DNA from: Oculina patagonica | Lineage: Eukaryota | Length of the DNA: 64,000 bases | Assembly: GCF_052425735.1 (NCBI RefSeq) | Contig: NC_135767.1 | Location: 1,488,001-1,552,000, forward strand | Direction of reading: 5' to 3' | Shown here: one piece after another, positions 44,311 to 53,998 of the stretch | Numbering within the stretch: position 1 is the first letter of the stretch | Layout: each line of letters begins with the position of its first letter | Translations under genes and position numbers: made by a program | Notes under the pieces: generated by a model | What the model was told of the DNA's origin: nothing | Databases searched by the model: none | Seen by the model: only the letters and a program-made list of their open reading frames with translations

Positions 44311-44585
44311 ATGACTACTAGACTATTTTTAAAAGCCAATGAAAGCTTATCAGCGTGACCTTCAATGCCCTGCCTGGGCACCAGGCTCCACCCGGTTAAT
44401 CAATATAATACAGTGGCATTCACTGGTAACTGACGTGGACAGTTCCCATAGTTCCCAGTTCCCATGACTACTAGACTATTTTTAAAAAGCCAATGAAAGC
44501 TAATCAGCGTGACCCTGCCTGGGCACCAGGCTCCACCCGGTTAATCAATATATACAGTGGCATTCAAATGTGGACAGTTCCTATA
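44311..44585 (+). promoter_or_regulatory. duplicated ~120-150-bp proximal block with CCAAT motifs upstream of the DED-STAND gene
   Basis: ATGACTACTAGACTATTTTTAAAAGCCAATGAAAGC..CAGCGTGACC..CTGCCTGGGCACCAGGCTCCACCCGGTTAATCAATATA occurs at 44311 and 44464; CRE-like TGACGTCA at 44599-44606. Confidence 0.5.
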
Positions 44586-44728: not shown

Positions 44729-47700
44729 ATGACGGGCTTGTCGTTCAAGTCGCTTCTGATGTCCATTTCGGATCAACTCAAGAGCGAAGACCTCGACAGA
44801 ATGAAGTTTGGCCTGGACTTACCTCAGGGGAAATTAGAAGACGTGCACAAACCGTATGAACTTTTTCAAAAAATGATAAACGCTAAGCTGTTATCTGAGG
44901 AAAATCGCGACCATTTAGCGTCCCTATTACAGTTTGCTGGGCGAATCGATTTAAGTAAAGAGCTGCTTCAAGACATTCATGATCAAGTGAAGTCAACTAC
45001 TGAACAAGGTGAGCTACAAAGAGCTAAATTTGCTACTACAAATTATTCTAAAAGAGGGACACGAAATGGCATTCAATCAGCTTACATAGAACTGGAAACA
45101 TAACTATATAAAGCACCTGTCTTTCTTTCTCTATTTTATGTTTTCCTGAACTTTAAGCGTTTTAAATAATGCTACACGGGACGAGAACAATAATGATAAT
45201 GATAATTTTCCATATGTATATATACAAAAGCAACTACCCTGTACAGTTCAGTTCTTCCAAACACAATTCTATGATCAGTTTAGGACGTTCTTTGTTGACA
45301 GCTAGTATGAATAGCTAATAACTATAAACAAATCTGGATCTACTGCTCACCGAGTAAGAAAGAACGAAGGAAAGAAAATTGTTGTCAATTTACTACAAAA
45401 GCGGAAGTCGATCAGGATCGAAAGATTTTCTGCGTGACCATCATTGAATCCAAAGATAAAGAATTACCAATTTTCTCCAATTCCTAGGACGTATTTTAGA
45501 GATGATTTTTCTCGTCTGGTCACTCGAGCTTCATTTATTTATTAATTTTGGTTAACAAATCAGAGAAGCCAGAATTTTTTCTGTAAATGGGACTGAATTC
45601 GTCACGCTGTTTAATATTGCAGTTCAAATGTTGAAGGTTACATGTGTTTACGTTTCGGAAATCACGCTATCACTAAAATCGTTTTGTAGCCGTTATTGGG
45701 ATGAAAGTCAGTGGTAGTGGACAGTTTTACAGTGTAAAACAATGATTCTTGTGGAAGAAATAACTGTTGTTTGTTTGCCAGAGGTTCGCGCGTCCAAAAG
45801 TGCACGAAATATCCTCGACCCTTCCGGTGTCAATATTCGCGTGCTTTCCGCCATGTGCGCTGACGGTCACGTCACGGATGGAGTGATACCAAGTGACTTA
45901 GAACATTAATATGCTGCTAGTGGTTTAATTGTTTATTTGTTATCGGTTATTCATGAATTCTGAATAAGGGCAATCAGTTGAAAACATGTTCGCTCTGCAT
46001 AAGAAATGAATGAAACTCTAGGGGGAGTGGGGTTGGGACTAACAGCGACTACAGGAAGGGGAACAGGAAGGGGTTGAACAGGCGCGGCTGTGTATTTAGC
46101 GTGGCTAATTCAAGGAGGGAATTTGTCTCACCAAAATTAAAACTATGTGATTCCAGTTTTGAATTTCATTTGGTTGTAAATATTTTAACTTCGTAAGGGT
46201 ACGAGATTATCCAGTTAATCGTAACAGAATGCTTGATTTTGATTGGTTCTGCGCGCCCCTATTTAAAGAGTACCGATTGGCGCGCGATCGCGTGGGTGTC
46301 CAATGTGAACAACCTCGCGCGTCAATCACCAGCATTTAAATGGGTTCTCTCTTGTTCAGTTATTTTTCTACTGTTTTTACAACCTGTTGAATTTACCTTT
46401 AACTTTTTCACACAAAAAAGGTTCTTAAAGACTTCATAACCTCAAATTTTGTTATCGATACGATTGATAAGTAATTGGACATCGTGTCGTACAATTCAGA
46501 GAGTAATCGTGCTCATAATTTCAAAAAAGTTTTTTTGAAATTACTTGCCCAATTACTCCCTGAATTGTACTCCACTCAGTTCAATTACTATTTCTTATTC
46601 TACTAGTTCCACAAGTTATTCTACTATCTTTGTTTTGCGTTTTAGAAATCAGTTCATTTTTCGATGGCCAAGACAACGCCCTCCCCTGCAGACCACCTCA
46701 TTTTTACGGAAGAGATGAAACTTTGGATGAAATTGTTGGAATACTCAGTGAAAACGATGGCCGACGCCTTGTTGTCATAACTGGACCACCAGGTTACGGA
46801 AAATCCTGTTTAGCGCGAGCTATCGGTCACACTATGCTTGAAAAAGAATTCCAAGTTATTTTCTTGTCCTTACGGGAAATTAAGTCTGTAGACAAAATGT
46901 CTACGAATATTCTTCTTGCTTTGAATGTTTCCCAGGGAGTCGCCAACAGGCAGCGGGATTTGGCTTTGTCGCATTTAAGTTCTTTAACCACGAAGACTAT
47001 TTTGATTTTGGACAATGCTGAAGATCTTATAAATCAACCGGACACGAAACAAAAATTTGGTAGTTTTGTTGATCACGTGATTATGTATGCAAAGAATGTG
47101 CAATGCGTCATCGCCTCAAGAGTGTCGTGTCCAGCCTCTTGTCAGACCTTGCGTCACCCGGTCGAACTAGGCGCCTTAGAAAACGATGCCGCGGCTAAAC
47201 TACTTCAAGCAAAGGTTCAAGAAAACTCCAAATTAACGCTCGAAGACGCTGAAGCTTCAACCATTGCTAACCTTTGTTTGAACATTCCCCTCATTTTGCA
47301 CGCTGCGGCAGCTTACTTGGAAGTTGTCAACCCGCAGACACTTATTCAAATTTTGGAAGAAAATTTCACCGCTCCTTTAGACCTGGCGGACATGGATGAT
47401 TTGTCACCGGACTTTAAAATGAAGCGCTTTCTCAAAGATTGTTTGCAACAGCTCGGCCAAGAACTAGAAGAGGCGCTTATCTCGTTGGCTGTCTTCCCAG
47501 CTGCTTTCAGTTACGAACAAGCAGCGTGCGTTTATGGTTCACACCAACTCCACTCCACTTTGATGCAGCTTGTGAAGAGATCCCTTGTACACAGTAATGT
47601 GACATCTAAGACGTTTGTTGTCCACCGAGTCATTCAGCTTTGCTGCGAGGAAAAAGCCGAGAAAGATGAGCGGTTGTGCGCGTGTTACAGCAATGCGCGC

Positions 47701-50700
47701 CAGAGGTTTATTGAACATTATTTGAGTCTAATTACAGAACTTCATCGGGGATTTTTAAGCAAAGATGACTCGAAAAAGACACTTTGTCGTTATTTTGCAG
47801 AGGAGCAGCACATTATTCAAGCAATTTGGTGGGCGGCCAAAAGTGGTACAGCGCTCGCTACACGCTGTGCAGAGATTCTCAACCAAGCAGTCATTTTCTT
47901 ATGCAAAGTCATGAAGAAGAGTGAATTTGAAAAACTCTACGAGGTCGTCCTCAACTGTTGCCAAGGAGATTTGCGGATCGTGGCTGATTGTCTTACGTGT
48001 GTTGGTATAAATCAAATCTACAGCTGTGAGTGCCACCGGACATGTGACGTAGTGTCAGAATGGGGCTACAGGATACTCCAGAGAGCGTTGGGGAACTACG
48101 AACAGCTAAACCTGACAGAGGGAGATCTAGTAGCGCAGTGCAATAGCAAGATCGCCCGTTGCATGGCCATGAATGGAAATCCTATAACAGCTCTTAAACT
48201 GAGCGCAAAAGCTCTTGCTATCTGTGAAAAGAAGAAAGAAGAGGAACCCCTGCAGTATGCAGCTTGCTGTAACGATAGAGCAGGTTTGACGCATTTGACT
48301 GCTTCATCGTTAAGTAAGGGGAATACAGATAGACAGTCGAGGGAATAAGTGCCAGTTTTGGCAAATCTTCGTTGAAGCACTCAAAAAATTTCCGAATTAT
48401 TTCATCCAATCAAAAACTTGCGCGAGTGCTCACGAGTGCTCCGAAATCACGCGTACAATTACGTCATGTTGCTTAGCAACTTCTGGGACGAAAACCGCGG
48501 GCTCAGTCACTTCTCGGAGAAGTGATATCCGGCCATGATTCTGTCGTCATCAAATGGCACTTGTTCCGACGACTGTAGAGTGAGATTTGCGCTATAACCG
48601 GTTGGAGAAATTTCTGCTGATCCGCCAAAAAATTACAATCATTTGAAAATAACCCGGTAGGAGACACAAGTTAAACTGTTGAACGTGTTTGTTGCAGATT
48701 GTACAGAAAAAGTTTTCTGGTTTGGTTTTAATTGAGTCGAGCCCATACTTTATACAAAGAGTCGCAAAAGTCACAAGAGGGTCTGAATGGGGTTTATTTG
48801 CTCATAATTTTTAGTATTTGCTGTAAAATTGGCAAATGTTTAGGAAAAAATTAGCATTGAAAATTCTTATCTGCTCTTCTAAAATCGGATAAAATCAGTC
48901 ATGAACTTAGAGAAAATTTTCGGATTTCTCCTCGGAAATCTTCAGTAGGCTTCTTAGTTCTTCAGCAGTCTTTGGAAATCTTCGGCAGTCTTCGGGAATA
49001 TTCGGTAGACTTTGGAAATCGTCCGAACTGATCGGTAAACGTCGGAAATGGCCGACAACTTCTTCATATACTAAACAAAATAATATTGGTCTTTTTGGAG
49101 TCGTTTTTATTTCTTTTCGCTGAAAATTTGCTGTTACAATGATTTTTTTACTGTTAGTGTTAAAATGCCTAAAATTTTACTGTTTCGTGTTACAGAGCCA
49201 AAAAAATAAAGTGTTTAGTGTTATCGACGTAACCCCATTCAGACCCTCTCACAAGTTTAATTGTTTTGATTAACACGGGTTAATTTGCTTCATTAGTTGT
49301 ACAAAGCTCCTTGAACAACCACGAGGAAGCCCTGAGCCTCAGAGAACGCGCTCTCAGTGCTTGTGTTGACCAACTAGACGATCACCCATTAACAGGAACC
49401 CTTTATAACTACCTTGGTAATGATTGCCTCGCGCTGGGCAACTTTGATAAAGCTGTTGAATATTTCTCCAAGGCGCTAAGCATCAGGAATGAGTTTCTTG
49501 GGTTTTACCACCAAAAGACTTCCCGCACACTCCACGATTTGGGTGTAGCTTACAAAATGAAGGTTAGTTTATCTTTTTTTCGTGTTTACTTTTTATAAGC
49601 TATAATAGGTCTCGCACGATCGAGTGTGAGAGGTCTGCAATCTGTTAAGATTGTATTTGACATTACCTGTGGCATCGGCGACTTCAGAGTGTAAATTTCT
49701 GCCCTCCAACGTCTGAAGAACAACCCAAAAAACACCATGAAGCGGGATCGTCTGATCTGCCTAGTTATGCATTGTCACAAATCGATTTCGGACACACCGG
49801 ACATTGTTAAAGACATTTTGGGAGGGGGTATGCGCTTTGCTTGGGGTGCGATAGCCCCCCACCCCCGGGGTTTGAAAACGCTCTGCCGCCTCAGTAAACC
49901 ATGGTCACATCCTCAAAATGGCGTCGGTAGCAGCCCAGAACTAAAAACTGCGGCTAAAAGTTGTCAAACGCAATTTTGCAGATAGTGTACATGCTGCAGG
50001 TCAAAATGATGTTCAGGTTAAATCTTTTTTCAACCTAGGTTGATCTGTTTCAGCCCGAAGATAACGCTCTTTTAATAACTTATAATAATTCGAATTTATT
50101 TATTAGGATTTTTTAATCAATTTAAATTGTTTTAAGTGATTAAAAGAGTATCAGATCTTCAGATTGAAACAGATGAACCTAGGTTGAAAACAGATTTAAC
50201 CTGAAAACCAATTTGTCCTGCAACCATGCAGAAGCCATAATTGGGTCCCATAATCGGAGCCATAATCGGGTCCCATAATCGGAGCCATAATCGGTTCCCA
50301 TAATCGGGTCCTATAATTGGAGCCATAATTGGGTCCCATAATTGGAGCCATAATTGGGTCACATAATTGGAGCCATAATCGGGTCCCATAATCGGAGTCA
50401 TAATCGGTTATGTTGCCAGCAATGCGTGCAACATTGTGCCCAATGCAAAAGCTTGAGTGTTGCATCGTGTATTCAGGCCTATGACTGATTCTAATAAATT
50501 TTCCTTCATTTCCAGGGAGACTATGTCAACGCTATGGAGAAACTAAACTCGGCCGTTGTGATCCAAGAAGCCTTGTTTGACATTCCACAGGAGAAACTCT
50601 ATTCCCTCCAGGAGAAGAGTGAAGTATGCTGTCGGCTGAATTTACCTGATAGTGAAACATGCGTTCAGCAAATACAAGTAAAAATAGAAGAATGCAAGGA

Positions 50701-50785
50701 ACAGATAAAACAAGCCAAAGAGTTCACAACATTTAGACTGGAAAAAATTATGGACATTGCTAACAAAAATTATGTTGCACCTTAG
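44729..50785 (+). CDS. DED - STAND P-loop NTPase (NB-ARC-like) - TPR protein, NLR-like, ~817 aa
   Basis: Exons 44729-45008, 46646-48283, 49297-49562, 50516-50785; phases 1,1,0; 2454 nt. Exon 1 is a DED (FKSLLMSISDQL..DLDRMKF..LF..AGRIDL, with the RxDL motif). Exon 2 has FYGR, Walker A GPPGYGKS, Walker B ILILDNAED, sensor IASR, NIPL (GxP-equivalent) and a winged helix ending VHRVIQ. TPRs follow (HPLTGTLYNYLGN..LGNFDKAVEYFSKALSIR..HQKTSRTLHDLGVAY). Confidence 0.88.
48777..49248. mobile_element. TIR element with 6-bp TSD in intron 2 of the STAND gene
   Basis: TIR GAGGGTCTGAATGGGGTT / AACCCCATTCAGACCCTC; TCACAA at 48771-48776 and 49249-49254. Confidence 0.8.
50234..50407. repeat. 25-bp minisatellite (~7 copies) in intron 3
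   Basis: Unit GCCATAATYGGGTCCCATAATYGGA; it causes the spurious PIMAPIMG ORFs. Confidence 0.9.
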
Positions 50786-50841
50786 GACTGGAATTGAAGA
50801 TGTTACTTTAGTCATGTAACGGAGTTCTACATATAACCAAC

Positions 50842-51088
50842 TAGCCTGTGTTGCAGACGAACTAAACCTGGTATAGTCCGTCTGCGAACCAGCCAACGTG
50901 TAACTATGGTTTCACTGACGAGATCTACTCGACCAATCACGGCGCACGAAAGAATGGACCTAGTCAAGAGCCAATCAGTAGCTATTATAAAATACCCGGG
51001 TTACACGCGGGGGAGAGGGGGACAAGCTTTTGTTCACTGGCTCGCAGACGGACTATACCGGGGGTTTGTTCGTCTGCAACGCCGGCTA
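50842..51088. mobile_element. MITE (shorter related copy at ~8558-8650)
   Basis: TAGCCTGTGTTGCAGACGAAC / GTTCGTCTGCAACGCCGGCTA. Confidence 0.7.
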
Positions 51089-53657: not shown

Positions 53658-53921
53658 CTAAGGAGCAACATTATTGTTGTTAGCAAAGTCCATAATTCTT
53701 TCCAGTCTGATGTTGCTAAACTCTCTCGCTTGCGTCATCTGTTCCGTGCACTCCTGTATTTTCACTTGTATTTGCTGAGCAGTTGTTTCGGGTAAATTCA
53801 TCTGACAGCATAACTCGCTCTTCTCTTTGAGGGACTTGAGTTTCTCGTGTGGAACGTCAAATAACTTCTCTTGGATCCTGACAGCCGCGTTAAGTTGTTC
53901 CATTGCTGTCACAAAGTTTCC
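53658..53921 (-). CDS. intact terminal exon paralogous to the last (TPR-helical) exon of the DED-STAND-TPR gene; parent transcript unresolved
   Basis: Acceptor TTCATTTCCAG|GGA is identical to that at 50516. The 87-aa product GNFVTAMEQLNAAV..IMDFANNNNVAP* matches 59/87 residues of 50516-50785 by hand alignment, with the same stop position. Confidence 0.8.
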   Translation of the reverse strand, partial: GNFVTAMEQLNAAVRIQEKLFDVPHEKLKSLKEKSELCCQMNLPETTAQQIQVKIQECTEQMTQAREFSNIRLERIMDFANNNNVAP

Positions 53922-53998
53922 CTGGAAATGAAAGAGAAAGCAGCATCGATGAAGACGCCGAAAAGTCACACGCAGTGCCGGGATGTCACCCCCATTTA

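Follow-up and report, generated by a model that had tools for sequence, protein, structure and literature searches.

Repertoires of cnidarian NB-ARC and NACHT genes, whose products have a Death, DED or CARD domain in front and TPRs behind, have been catalogued repeatedly. DED-bearing homologues of CED-4/Apaf-1 from Nematostella, and TPRs in the place of WD40 repeats, were reported in 2007 (Zmasek et al. 2007, PMC2246300), and Death/DED-NACHT or NB-ARC proteins are known from Hydra (Lange et al. 2011, cited in PMC3879445). Coral NB-ARC proteins mostly carry TPRs (Noel et al. 2023, PMC10236652), NACHT/NB-ARC-TPR genes number 57 in Acropora and 103 in Hydra viridissima (PMC7642931), and shuffling of the effector domains at the N-terminus has been suggested for Acropora (Hamada et al. 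2013, according to the summary in PMC4083563). DED/Death-NB-ARC-TPR proteins had already been described in Nematostella, Hydra and Acropora (PMC2246300, PMC7642931, PMC4083563, PMC3879445). A sequence-only reading of the DNA analysed here had taken a STAND-TPR design to be unusual for an animal; this premise is not supported, given these surveys and the shuffling proposal.

The window, a 64,000-nucleotide stretch of the Oculina patagonica genome, contains at positions 44729-50785 (plus strand) a four-exon gene for an 817-aa product, with a joined coding sequence of 2454 nt and no internal stop (Table 1). The locus is a real, spliced and conserved gene encoding an APAF-1-like switch with a DED in front and TPRs behind. 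It is an ordinary, well-documented member of its kind, which has been on record from corals, sea anemones and Hydra since 2007, and not a new receptor type. Our analysis adds to this record a scleractinian-wide, low-copy clade under purifying selection, and paralogues in which Death or CARD exons occupy the same phase-1 slot.

Gene structure and splicing

The recomputed coding sequence reproduced the exon coordinates, lengths and phases of the sequence-only reading. The locus is already in the public annotation as the NCBI hypothetical protein ACROYT_G032679 of Oculina patagonica (817 aa), which has the same length and aligned sequence as the predicted product, with a 100% match over exon 2 and agreement in the N- and C-terminal sequence of the alignment.

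Splicing of exon 1 to exon 2, on which the earlier reading had staked its interpretation, was recovered in contigs of runs X4 and X5 (45008->46646, with the joint placed at 45006/8->46644/6). The joint that removes intron 2 (48283->49297) was found in contigs of X1 and X5, and that removing intron 3 (49562->50516) in contigs of X1, X4 and X5. All three introns are therefore taken out at GT..AG in RNA-like assemblies from three studies, and exons 1, 2 and 3 are joined in a single 2032-nt contig. The public runs X1, X4 and X5 were only guessed to be RNA; splicing is accepted on three grounds: the GT..AG joints without intron sequence, the depth over the unique parts of intron 1, which is zero in X4 and close to zero in X1 and X5, and the DNA-like run X13, which lacks all three joints and has continuous coverage of intron 1. 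No contig of the assembled runs reached the start codon, so that the 5' end is predicted, and one X1 contig has intron 1 running into exon 2.

Table 1. Features of the focal gene, with positions in the window
Feature	Position	Strand	Description
Exon 1	44729..45008	+	280 nt, ATG to phase-1 donor AAG|gtgagc; aa 1-93 and first base of codon 94; DED
Intron 1	45009..46645	+	1637 nt, GT..AG; high-copy repeats
Inverted repeat in intron 1	46470-46589		59-nt
Exon 2	46646..48283	+	1638 nt, phase 1-1; acceptor ttttag|AAATCA, donor GCAG|gtttga
Exon 2 content			Linker; NTPase of NB-ARC type (aa ~105-420: NBD, helical domain, winged helix); start of TPR-like arm (aa 421-639)
Walker A / P-loop GPPGYGKS	46783..46806	+	aa 140-147; G145 and K146 invariant, G143 nearly invariant (n=14 homologues)
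Walker B ILILDNAED	46999..47025	+	aa 212-220; D216, N217 and E219 invariant among homologues
MHD-like His420 (FVVHRV)	47623..47625	+	End of second winged-helix strand (416-419)
Intron 2	48284..49296	+	1013 nt, GT..AG; many high-copy repeats, word depths in thousands
Exon 3	49297..49562	+	266 nt, begins in phase 1 and ends in phase 0; aa 640-727, canonical TPR_12 repeats
Intron 3	49563..50515	+	953 nt, GT..AG
Inverted repeat in intron 3	49995-50222		68-nt
Tandem array in intron 3	50233-50407		25-nt period
Exon 4	50516..50785	+	Last TPR-like helices, long C-terminal helix aa 774-811; stop TAG 50783-50785

Domains of the predicted protein

The first exon matches the Pfam DED profile (PF01335) at 7.7e-16, with 58.6 bits against a cut-off of 35.9, over profile positions 1-77 of 82. 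AlphaFold2 (AF2) models it as a six-helix bundle at pLDDT 78-90 (helices 3-16, 19-28, 33-36, 42-51, 61-69 and 73-99). When the DED-only model was compared with the PDB by Foldseek, the best 50 matches were all DEDs (caspase-8, FADD, cFLIP, PEA-15, MC159), at probability 1.00 and TM 0.7-0.84, with E-values of only ~0.01 because the domain is small. The best structural match was caspase-8 DED1 (38-40% identity, rmsd 1.1-1.4 A), which was also matched in a sequence search of the PDB (E 7e-4). The sequence-only reading had proposed a DED on a phase-1 exon of its own, to be checked by HMM and AlphaFold, and both the fold and the exon boundary bear this out.

An RxDL motif in helix 6 and a hydrophobic F-L patch in helix 2 are hallmarks of DEDs. 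The focal domain has an RxDL-type motif (R72-I-D74-L75), and the position of the patch reads F-G (F27 then G28). The motif is replaced by KxHL or KxNL in the orthologues of Montipora and Acropora (Acroporidae) and is absent in Nematostella, which makes a single conserved DED interface less likely.

The NTPase class of exon 2 is ambiguous from single-sequence Pfam scores alone, with NB-ARC at 4.5e-10 (39.7 bits), nSTAND1 at 3.8e-10 (40.4 bits) and NACHT at 1.1e-8 (35.5 bits). A profile search of the PDB retrieved AfsR (1.8e-28), APAF-1 (1.1e-17) and Sr35 (1.9e-13), with no NACHT protein among the best 60 matches listed. The Foldseek list for the model was headed by the STAND-TPR protein PH0952 (TMt 0.64 over 738 columns), APAF-1, CED-4, NRCs and MalT, and its first NACHT protein stood only at rank 45. 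By these PDB profile and fold searches the NTPase is assigned to the NB-ARC (AP-ATPase) clade with APAF-1, CED-4, plant NLRs, AfsR and PH0952. Membership in NACHT, considered for its 35.5 bits, was ruled out by the same comparisons.

Both Walker motifs are intact, as had been claimed, with one refinement: the Walker B core ILILD (aa 212-216) is followed by N217 and E219-D220, so that an invariant Asn, and not an acidic residue, comes after the Walker B Asp. The usual second Walker B residue in NB-ARC proteins is Asp, and hydrolysis kinetics may therefore differ. The helical domain carries a GxP-like motif (N306-I-P308-L309) in which P308 and L309, together with C304, are invariant or nearly so. 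His420 is kept in 11 of the 14 aligned homologues and, judging from what is known of NB-ARC proteins, may serve as an MHD-type histidine. The NTPase module does lie within one 1638-nt phase 1-1 exon, as first described; this exon is not confined to the module, however, and also encodes ~220 aa of helical arm (aa 421-639).

Exon 3 matches TPR_12 at 2.1e-26 and exon 2 contains a weak TPR match, with kinesin light chain, LGN and consensus TPR as the TPR sequence matches in the PDB. Searched against Pfam, exon 4 alone gave nothing meaningful and no exon matched an LRR family, the repeats being TPRs. The full-length AF2 model (pLDDT 85.4, pTM 0.76) has ~18 helices after the winged helix (aa 421-811), mostly at pLDDT 85-97. 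This TPR-like solenoid of ~390 aa would, by analogy, be a regulatory or sensing arm. Pfam and AF2 agree with the order DED, STAND NTPase, TPR, and with the placement of the TPR exons after the NTPase exon, that had been read from the DNA.

Orthologues, paralogues and selection

The Acropora digitifera orthologue is LOC107358031 (823 aa); aligned end to end with the focal protein it shows 54% identity, and the TPR part is well conserved. Orthologues from Montipora and a partial Stylophora model were also recovered, and transcript-length contigs of other corals encode the same architecture in 816-826 aa. In the NTPase tree the focal clade is scleractinian only (support 100/100). It has two copies in the Oculina patagonica genome, one being an inverted tandem paralogue of the focal gene. 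Between these two, dN/dS is 0.18 overall, 0.12-0.31 per region and 0.14-0.23 in the helical and TPR regions, as a two-sequence Nei-Gojobori estimate by which selection on single sites would be missed; diversifying selection on the TPR arm was not found at this resolution. The dS of 0.68 implies that the tandem duplication is old. Judged from these comparisons, the clade is scleractinian-wide, low-copy and under purifying selection.

Proteins of similar architecture in Nematostella (837 aa; LOC5505963 / A7SNU5, 'DED domain-containing protein') and Actinia tenebrosa (838 aa; LOC116308654) align with the focal protein at 28% identity from residue 5-6 to ~797. Strict orthology with them was rejected, as they group with other Oculina DED paralogues (94/88, 99/97), located at C1:9.44 and C1:3.27 Mb. 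The tree contains three subclades, namely the focal DED, other DED and Death-bearing proteins, whose mutual order the tree does not settle.

Across the genome, at least 84 related NTPase exons were found, many in tandem clusters. The proposed survey of paralogues for swapped N-terminal exons was run and yielded Death or CARD exons that end in phase 1 before a homologous NTPase exon, in the same slot as the focal DED. The suggestion that the gene was built by exon shuffling is compatible with this exon structure; of these paralogues, only the one with the Death exon showed a matching phase-1 acceptor. In the paralogue with the CARD exon (C1:3.368-3.372 Mb) the reading frame changes within the NTPase exon, and this copy may be a pseudogene or contain an extra intron. 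Separately, a copy of the last exon of a paralogue lies in the window a few kb downstream of the focal gene.

Possible function and relation to known systems

A functional interpretation can build on what has been observed: the structure of the gene and its splicing, the identities and folds of the domains, their motifs, the conservation, and the candidate partners encoded in the genome. At least 75 DED exons occur in the genome. Candidate partners include a caspase-8-like DED-DED-caspase gene with QACRG at C1:43.088-43.096 Mb, another at C3:17.495-17.502 Mb, and a FADD-like DED+Death gene at C11:22.952-22.955 Mb. A complex prediction for the focal DED (aa 1-95) with the tandem DED encoded by the coral caspase-8-like gene L018 gave a score of 0.11 (mark 0.34), which counts neither for nor against an interaction.

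On balance, we lean towards an 817-aa cytosolic NB-ARC STAND switch with a DED output and a TPR arm that regulates or senses, in which clustered DEDs would set off cell death or a related signal. The analogy is with APAF-1, CED-4, plant NLRs and STAND-TPR proteins of the MalT/PH0952 type: the TPR arm would hold an ADP-bound monomer closed, and binding of a cue would lead to nucleotide exchange and oligomerisation. The clustered DEDs would then nucleate DED assemblies with a DED-containing partner, and these assemblies would pass on the signal; the partner, encoded in the same genome, would be a caspase-8-like protease or a FADD-like adaptor. Autoinhibition, oligomerisation, DED partner, cue and outcome are all inferred parts of this scheme. 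The low copy number, the conservation across stony corals and the purifying selection make a conserved cue, be it a danger signal of endogenous origin or a microbial molecule that is broadly conserved, more likely than a fast-changing pathogen effector. For the NB-ARC/NACHT proteins of cnidarians, a mechanism of the same class has been put forward before (PMC2246300, PMC4083563, PMC7642931).

A bolder extension, which we consider unlikely, is that the scleractinian clade forms a dedicated 'DED-apoptosome', responding through its TPR arm to a conserved endogenous cue (set free by stress or bleaching, for example) and nucleating caspase-8-type tandem-DED filaments directly, without a death receptor or FADD. 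If true, initiator caspases would have a third kind of platform in addition to the apoptosome and the DISC.

The same architecture might belong to a regulator or scaffold and not to a death trigger, with the DED acting as a decoy or modulator, as in cFLIP and PEA-15, or in non-death signalling (NF-kB or MAPK via FADD-like or TRAF-like proteins), and the NB-ARC-TPR part controlling its availability. The DEDs of PEA-15 and cFLIP are among the best structural matches, and F-G in place of F-L in the hydrophobic patch, together with the variable RxDL, would suit a modulatory DED. However, caspase-8 DED1 is closest by sequence (38-40% identity in the structural alignment, E 7e-4), and a STAND module behind an N-terminal death-fold is the architecture of the activation platforms APAF-1 and CED-4; we regard this alternative as somewhat improbable. 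A receptor of the plant-NLR type, evolving fast and specific to strains of a pathogen or symbiont, with a TPR arm that diversifies to follow its ligands, would be consistent with the many clustered NTPase exons, with the inverted tandem paralogue, and with the interpretation of cnidarian NB-ARC/NACHT expansions as immune repertoires (PMC4083563, PMC7642931). Such a role is quite unlikely for this gene, given the low dN/dS in the helical and TPR regions and the age of the duplication, the well-conserved TPR part of the Acropora orthologue, and a clade with only two copies in the genome.

That the model is instead an annotation artefact, with exon 1 taken from another transcript, or a decaying gene, is very improbable and refuted as far as present data go. 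The guessed nature of the RNA runs, the start codon missing from the contigs and the X1 contig with intron 1 sequence could be read this way, but exons 1-2-3 stand in one contig at GT..AG, their joints come from three studies and are lacking in the DNA-like run, the 2454-nt frame is open and under purifying selection, and the transcript-length contigs of other corals encode the same architecture.

As a clean test case the gene has a modest value: it is unusually conserved, its exon structure is confirmed, and candidate DED partners are encoded alongside it in the genome. Since Oculina patagonica serves as a model of bleaching, a link from such a platform to caspase-8-type apoptosis, if true, would bear on coral cell-death decisions under stress. 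We know of no functional, biochemical or genetic study of any DED-NB-ARC-TPR protein.

Among described proteins, those of Nematostella and Actinia share the order DED, NB-ARC, TPR and are of almost equal length; a hydrophobic tail closes the anemone proteins and is absent from the coral ones. The genome-wide surveys behind the repertoire of Acropora digitifera (Hamada et al. 2013) and the NB-ARC-TPR genes of corals (Noel et al. 2023), as covered by PMC4083563, PMC7642931 and PMC10236652, do not single out the focal low-copy clade, its exon phases or its purifying selection. The tripartite logic of effector, NOD and repeats, with death-fold effectors, is shared with bona fide NLRs of animals (NACHT-LRR) and with the Death/DED-NACHT or NB-ARC proteins of Hydra. 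The sequence-only reading used the label 'NLR-like'; under the strict definition in PMC3879445 the focal protein is not an NLR because its NTPase is of NB-ARC type, not NACHT, and its repeats are TPRs, not LRRs.

PH0952 (6mfv), the best structural match, AfsR, the best profile match for the NTPase, and MalT likewise combine an NB-ARC/MalT-type NOD with a TPR sensor arm. They have DNA-binding or other N-terminal effectors in place of a death-fold, and are transcription regulators, not death platforms. APAF-1/CED-4, the second-best structural match, shares with the focal protein an NB-ARC module (NBD, helical domain, winged helix) behind a death-fold domain and, as proposed, action as an oligomeric caspase-activation platform. 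The N-terminal CARD and C-terminal WD40 propellers of an APAF-1 orthologue are lacking here. With a DED for the CARD and TPRs for WD40, the expected client would therefore be a DED-caspase, not a CARD-caspase, and cytochrome c would not be the expected cue.

Gene structure and transcript support

The focal gene (44729-50785, +), within C10:1488001-1552000 of this stony coral (N count zero), has four exons separated by GT..AG introns with polypyrimidine tracts, and the joined coding sequence of 2454 nt translates into 817 aa. The exon phases of 1, 1 and 0 claimed from sequence alone were borne out. The exon-2 translation is 100% identical to the 817-aa NCBI entry 'hypothetical protein ACROYT_G032679 [Oculina patagonica]', whose start and end agree with the gene model in alignment.

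Features of the focal gene, its surroundings, its paralogues and candidate partners (plain positions refer to the window; C and L numbers are contigs and sub-stretches of the O. patagonica genome, G000)
Feature	Position	Strand	Details
Direct repeats (two)	44326-44552		spacing about 150 nt; 35 nt (94% identity) and 40 nt (100% identity); 180-400 nt 5' of focal start codon
Focal exon 1	44729-45008	+	280 nt
Focal exon 2	46646-48283	+	1638 nt
Focal exon 3	49297-49562	+	266 nt
Focal exon 4	50516-50785	+	terminates in TAG
High-copy intronic repeats	46442-46640, 48233-48630, 48830-49430, 49626-49824		word depth hundreds or thousands in 4/4 runs
Hairpin among these repeats	46470-46589		59 nt, near-perfect
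Cys/His cluster DCLTC...SCECHRTC	48258-48317		aa 541-560
Inverted repeat, intron 3	49995-50062 and 50155-50222		68 nt, 87% complementary
Tandem array	50233-50407		12/13-nt CCATAATCGG-type unit, period 25
Inverted repeat, 3' side	50867-51062		31 nt, complementarity 87%, spacing 134 nt; 80 nt 3' of focal stop codon
Solitary inverted exon-4 copy	53661-53966	-	60.6% protein identity to focal exon 4
Inverted tandem paralogue	C10:1553941-1559854 (L013:1941-7854)	-	822 aa
Other DED-headed paralogues	C1:9.46, 9.44, 9.41 and 3.27 Mb
Death-headed paralogue	C1:9.290 Mb		Death exon, Pfam 1.4e-9
CARD-headed paralogue	L021 (C1:3366500-3374500)		CARD exon at C1:3.368 Mb
DED-DED-caspase	C1:43.088-43.096 Mb		active site QACRG
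Second DED-DED-caspase	C3:17.495-17.502 Mb		QVCRA
DED+Death, FADD-like genes	C11:22.95 and C5:6.40 Mb

Logan contigs of four public runs (X1, X4, X5 and X13), each from a different study, were placed on 44850-50800. Splicing of exon 1 to exon 2, as the sequence-only reading had proposed, was confirmed by X4 and X5 contigs that jump from 45008 to 46646; the joint 48283 to 49297 was found in X1 and X5, and 49562 to 50516 in X1, X4 and X5, with GT..AG ends at every contig-supported joint and exons 1, 2 and 3 united in one X5 contig (2032 nt). Over the unique parts of intron 1 (45049-46043), word depth fell to zero in X4 and almost to zero in both X1 and X5; in X13, one contig (depth 13.8) spanned this intron and no focal splice joint was seen among the contigs. 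By behaviour, X13 is DNA-like and X1, X4 and X5 are RNA-like, the RNA label in the index being only a guess. The focal ATG was reached by no contig among the four runs, and the 5' end is therefore putative. Independent support for the exon 1-exon 2 splice comes from other corals, in which transcript-length contigs (2.6-3.1 kb) encode 816-826-aa proteins of equal DED, NB-ARC and TPR Pfam content.

One X1 contig (1382 nt, 18 gap letters) extends upstream from exon 2 into intron 1 (46471-46645); an alternative first exon, a retained intron, RNA that had not been spliced or an assembly error caused by repeats could each account for it. In transcript contigs of 'organism C', 6 nt are deleted in frame at 44977, in the DED-linker region, and about 5% of positions in 47805-48355 differ from the window in contigs of three runs, the DNA-like X13 among them; these differences point to divergence between haplotypes or populations rather than to RNA editing. 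The direct repeats 5' of the gene may be a transposon end or a promoter-proximal element that was duplicated, the intron-3 inverted repeat with the array right after it (49995-50407) resembles a MITE next to a microsatellite, and the inverted repeat past the stop codon is MITE-like and falls in the putative 3' UTR.

Domains, fold and STAND clade

Pfam profiles identified a DED in exon 1 (7.7e-16; 58.6 bits, cut-off 35.9), NB-ARC (4.5e-10), nSTAND1 (3.8e-10) and NACHT (1.1e-8) in exon 2, and TPR_12 (2.1e-26) in exon 3. The full-length AlphaFold2 model, built from 50 homologues (pLDDT 85.4, pTM 0.76), comprises a six-helix bundle (aa 3-99), an alpha/beta NBD, helical domain and winged helix to about aa 420, and about 18 helices over aa 421-811, the last one long (774-811). 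The NTPase module does lie within exon 2, as had been claimed, but this exon also begins the helical arm, because the model helices run from aa 421. A DED-only model (pLDDT 78) compared with PDB structures upheld the DED fold of exon 1, as all of its best 50 matches were DEDs, including caspase-8 DED1 (38-40% identity, rmsd 1.1-1.4 A), FADD (TM 0.81-0.84), cFLIP, PEA-15 and MC159. The Cys/His cluster inside the helical arm, in a loop of lower model confidence (pLDDT about 67), is kept in seven of seven aligned scleractinian orthologues but only in part among remoter relatives, and might bind a metal.

Both Walker motifs are intact, in agreement with the sequence-only reading: the P-loop GPPGYGKS (aa 140-147) and Walker B ILILD (aa 212-216), the latter followed by N217 and E219, invariant in the homologue alignment. 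A GxP-like NIPL contains the invariant P308, and an MHD-like FVVHRV contains H420. When a profile of 50 homologues was searched against all PDB sequences, the NTPase matched AfsR (1.8e-28), APAF-1 (1.1e-17), wheat CNL Sr35 (1.9e-13) and NRC4, with no NACHT protein among the best 60 matches listed. Foldseek ranked the full model closest to PH0952, a STAND-TPR protein of archaea (TMt 0.64 over 738 columns), then to APAF-1, CED-4, tomato NRCs and MalT; the earliest NACHT protein appeared at rank 45. Together, these matches and motifs place the predicted protein among the NB-ARC (AP-ATPase) proteins.

Ancestry, selection and head exons

The focal protein and its Acropora digitifera orthologue LOC107358031 (823 aa) align over their whole length at 54% identity; orthologues of 826 aa occur in Montipora foliosa and M. 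capricornis, and that of Stylophora is an incomplete model wrongly named 'Nephrocystin-3'. A maximum-likelihood tree built from 32 rows of the NTPase region unites the focal protein and its coral orthologues in a scleractinian clade (100/100 support) on a long stem. One-to-one orthology with the DED-NB-ARC-TPR proteins of Nematostella (LOC5505963 / A7SNU5, 837 aa) and Actinia (838 aa) was rejected on this tree, which groups them elsewhere. The architecture is nevertheless old in Hexacorallia, because these anemone proteins cluster with other Oculina DED-headed paralogues.

The inverted tandem paralogue, about 20 kb from the focal gene and 2 kb past the window's end, is intact, matches the focal gene in its four exons and their phases, and encodes a protein about 79% identical to the focal one. 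Divergence between the two (dS 0.68, dN/dS 0.18 overall; DED 0.31, NBD 0.12, helical arm 0.23, TPR exon 0.14) shows purifying selection on all regions, in contrast with a fast-evolving receptor. TPR exon 3 is the most similar region (90% aa, dS 0.41), perhaps as a result of gene conversion. The solitary exon-4 copy, about 12 kb from the tandem paralogue, is almost identical to that paralogue's exon 4, with the tail ...LNLPETTAQQIQVKIQECTEQMTQAREFSNIRLERIMDFANNNNVAP common to both, and may represent either a relic or a terminal exon that was captured.

Exon shuffling had been proposed as the origin of the gene. Exon counts across the genome reach at least 84 for the related NTPase, 75 for DED, 150 for Death and 30 for CARD, each figure a lower bound, and a DED exon lies 1-7 kb 5' of a homologous NTPase exon in the focal gene, in its tandem paralogue and at four C1 loci (the pairing at 9.41 Mb, 6.7 kb apart, being the least certain). 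Elsewhere a Death or CARD exon fills the head position; every head exon examined ends in phase 1, the NTPase exon is phase 1-1 in the Death and DED paralogues checked, and paralogue heads are presumably spliced to their NTPase exons. This design is compatible with shuffling. Death-headed and DED-headed lineages form separate old clades in the NTPase tree; head swapping did take place within the family, yet not recently at the focal locus. In the CARD-headed paralogue, the CARD exon has a phase-1 donor 1.6 kb 5' of the homologous NB-ARC exon, whose reading frame changes near C1:3371047; this copy either is damaged or contains an additional intron.

Putative mechanism and known systems

No functional study of a DED-NB-ARC-TPR protein was found in the literature searched. 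If the protein behaves like APAF-1, CED-4, plant NLRs or STAND proteins of the MalT type, an ADP-bound monomer would be held closed by the TPR arm, a cue on this arm would allow nucleotide exchange and oligomerisation, and the DEDs thus brought together would recruit a DED partner, for which the genome offers two DED-DED-caspases and FADD-like genes as candidates. A complex prediction that paired the focal DED with the tandem DED of the C3 caspase scored 0.11 against a mark of 0.34, which speaks neither for nor against binding. A conserved cue is more likely than a variable pathogen effector, because the clade is low-copy and constrained. The proposal, made from the sequence, that caspase-8 is activated directly is weakened by two features: the focal DED has F27-G28 where F-L is usual, and its RxDL motif (R72-x-D74-L75) is lost from Acroporidae orthologues.

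The Actinia (P0059) and Nematostella (P0063) proteins differ from those of corals in a C-terminal hydrophobic stretch of about 20 residues (e.g., LLVVAILVLVAAIVA), which suggests a tail anchor. The architecture could be called NLR-like loosely, but not under the strict NACHT-LRR definition (PMC3879445). The premise that TPR sensors do not belong in animal receptors was mistaken, given the published cnidarian record: in Nematostella, CED-4/Apaf-1 homologues bear DEDs, and WD40 is 'replaced by TPR repeats' (Zmasek et al. 2007, PMC2246300), Acropora has about 500 NACHT/NB-ARC loci (Hamada et al. 2013, in the summary of PMC4083563), TPR-type genes number 57 in Acropora and 103 in Hydra viridissima (PMC7642931), and most coral NB-ARC proteins have TPRs (PMC10236652). 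Because of these records, DED-NB-ARC-TPR is an already known kind of architecture, of which the focal gene is a well-documented member.
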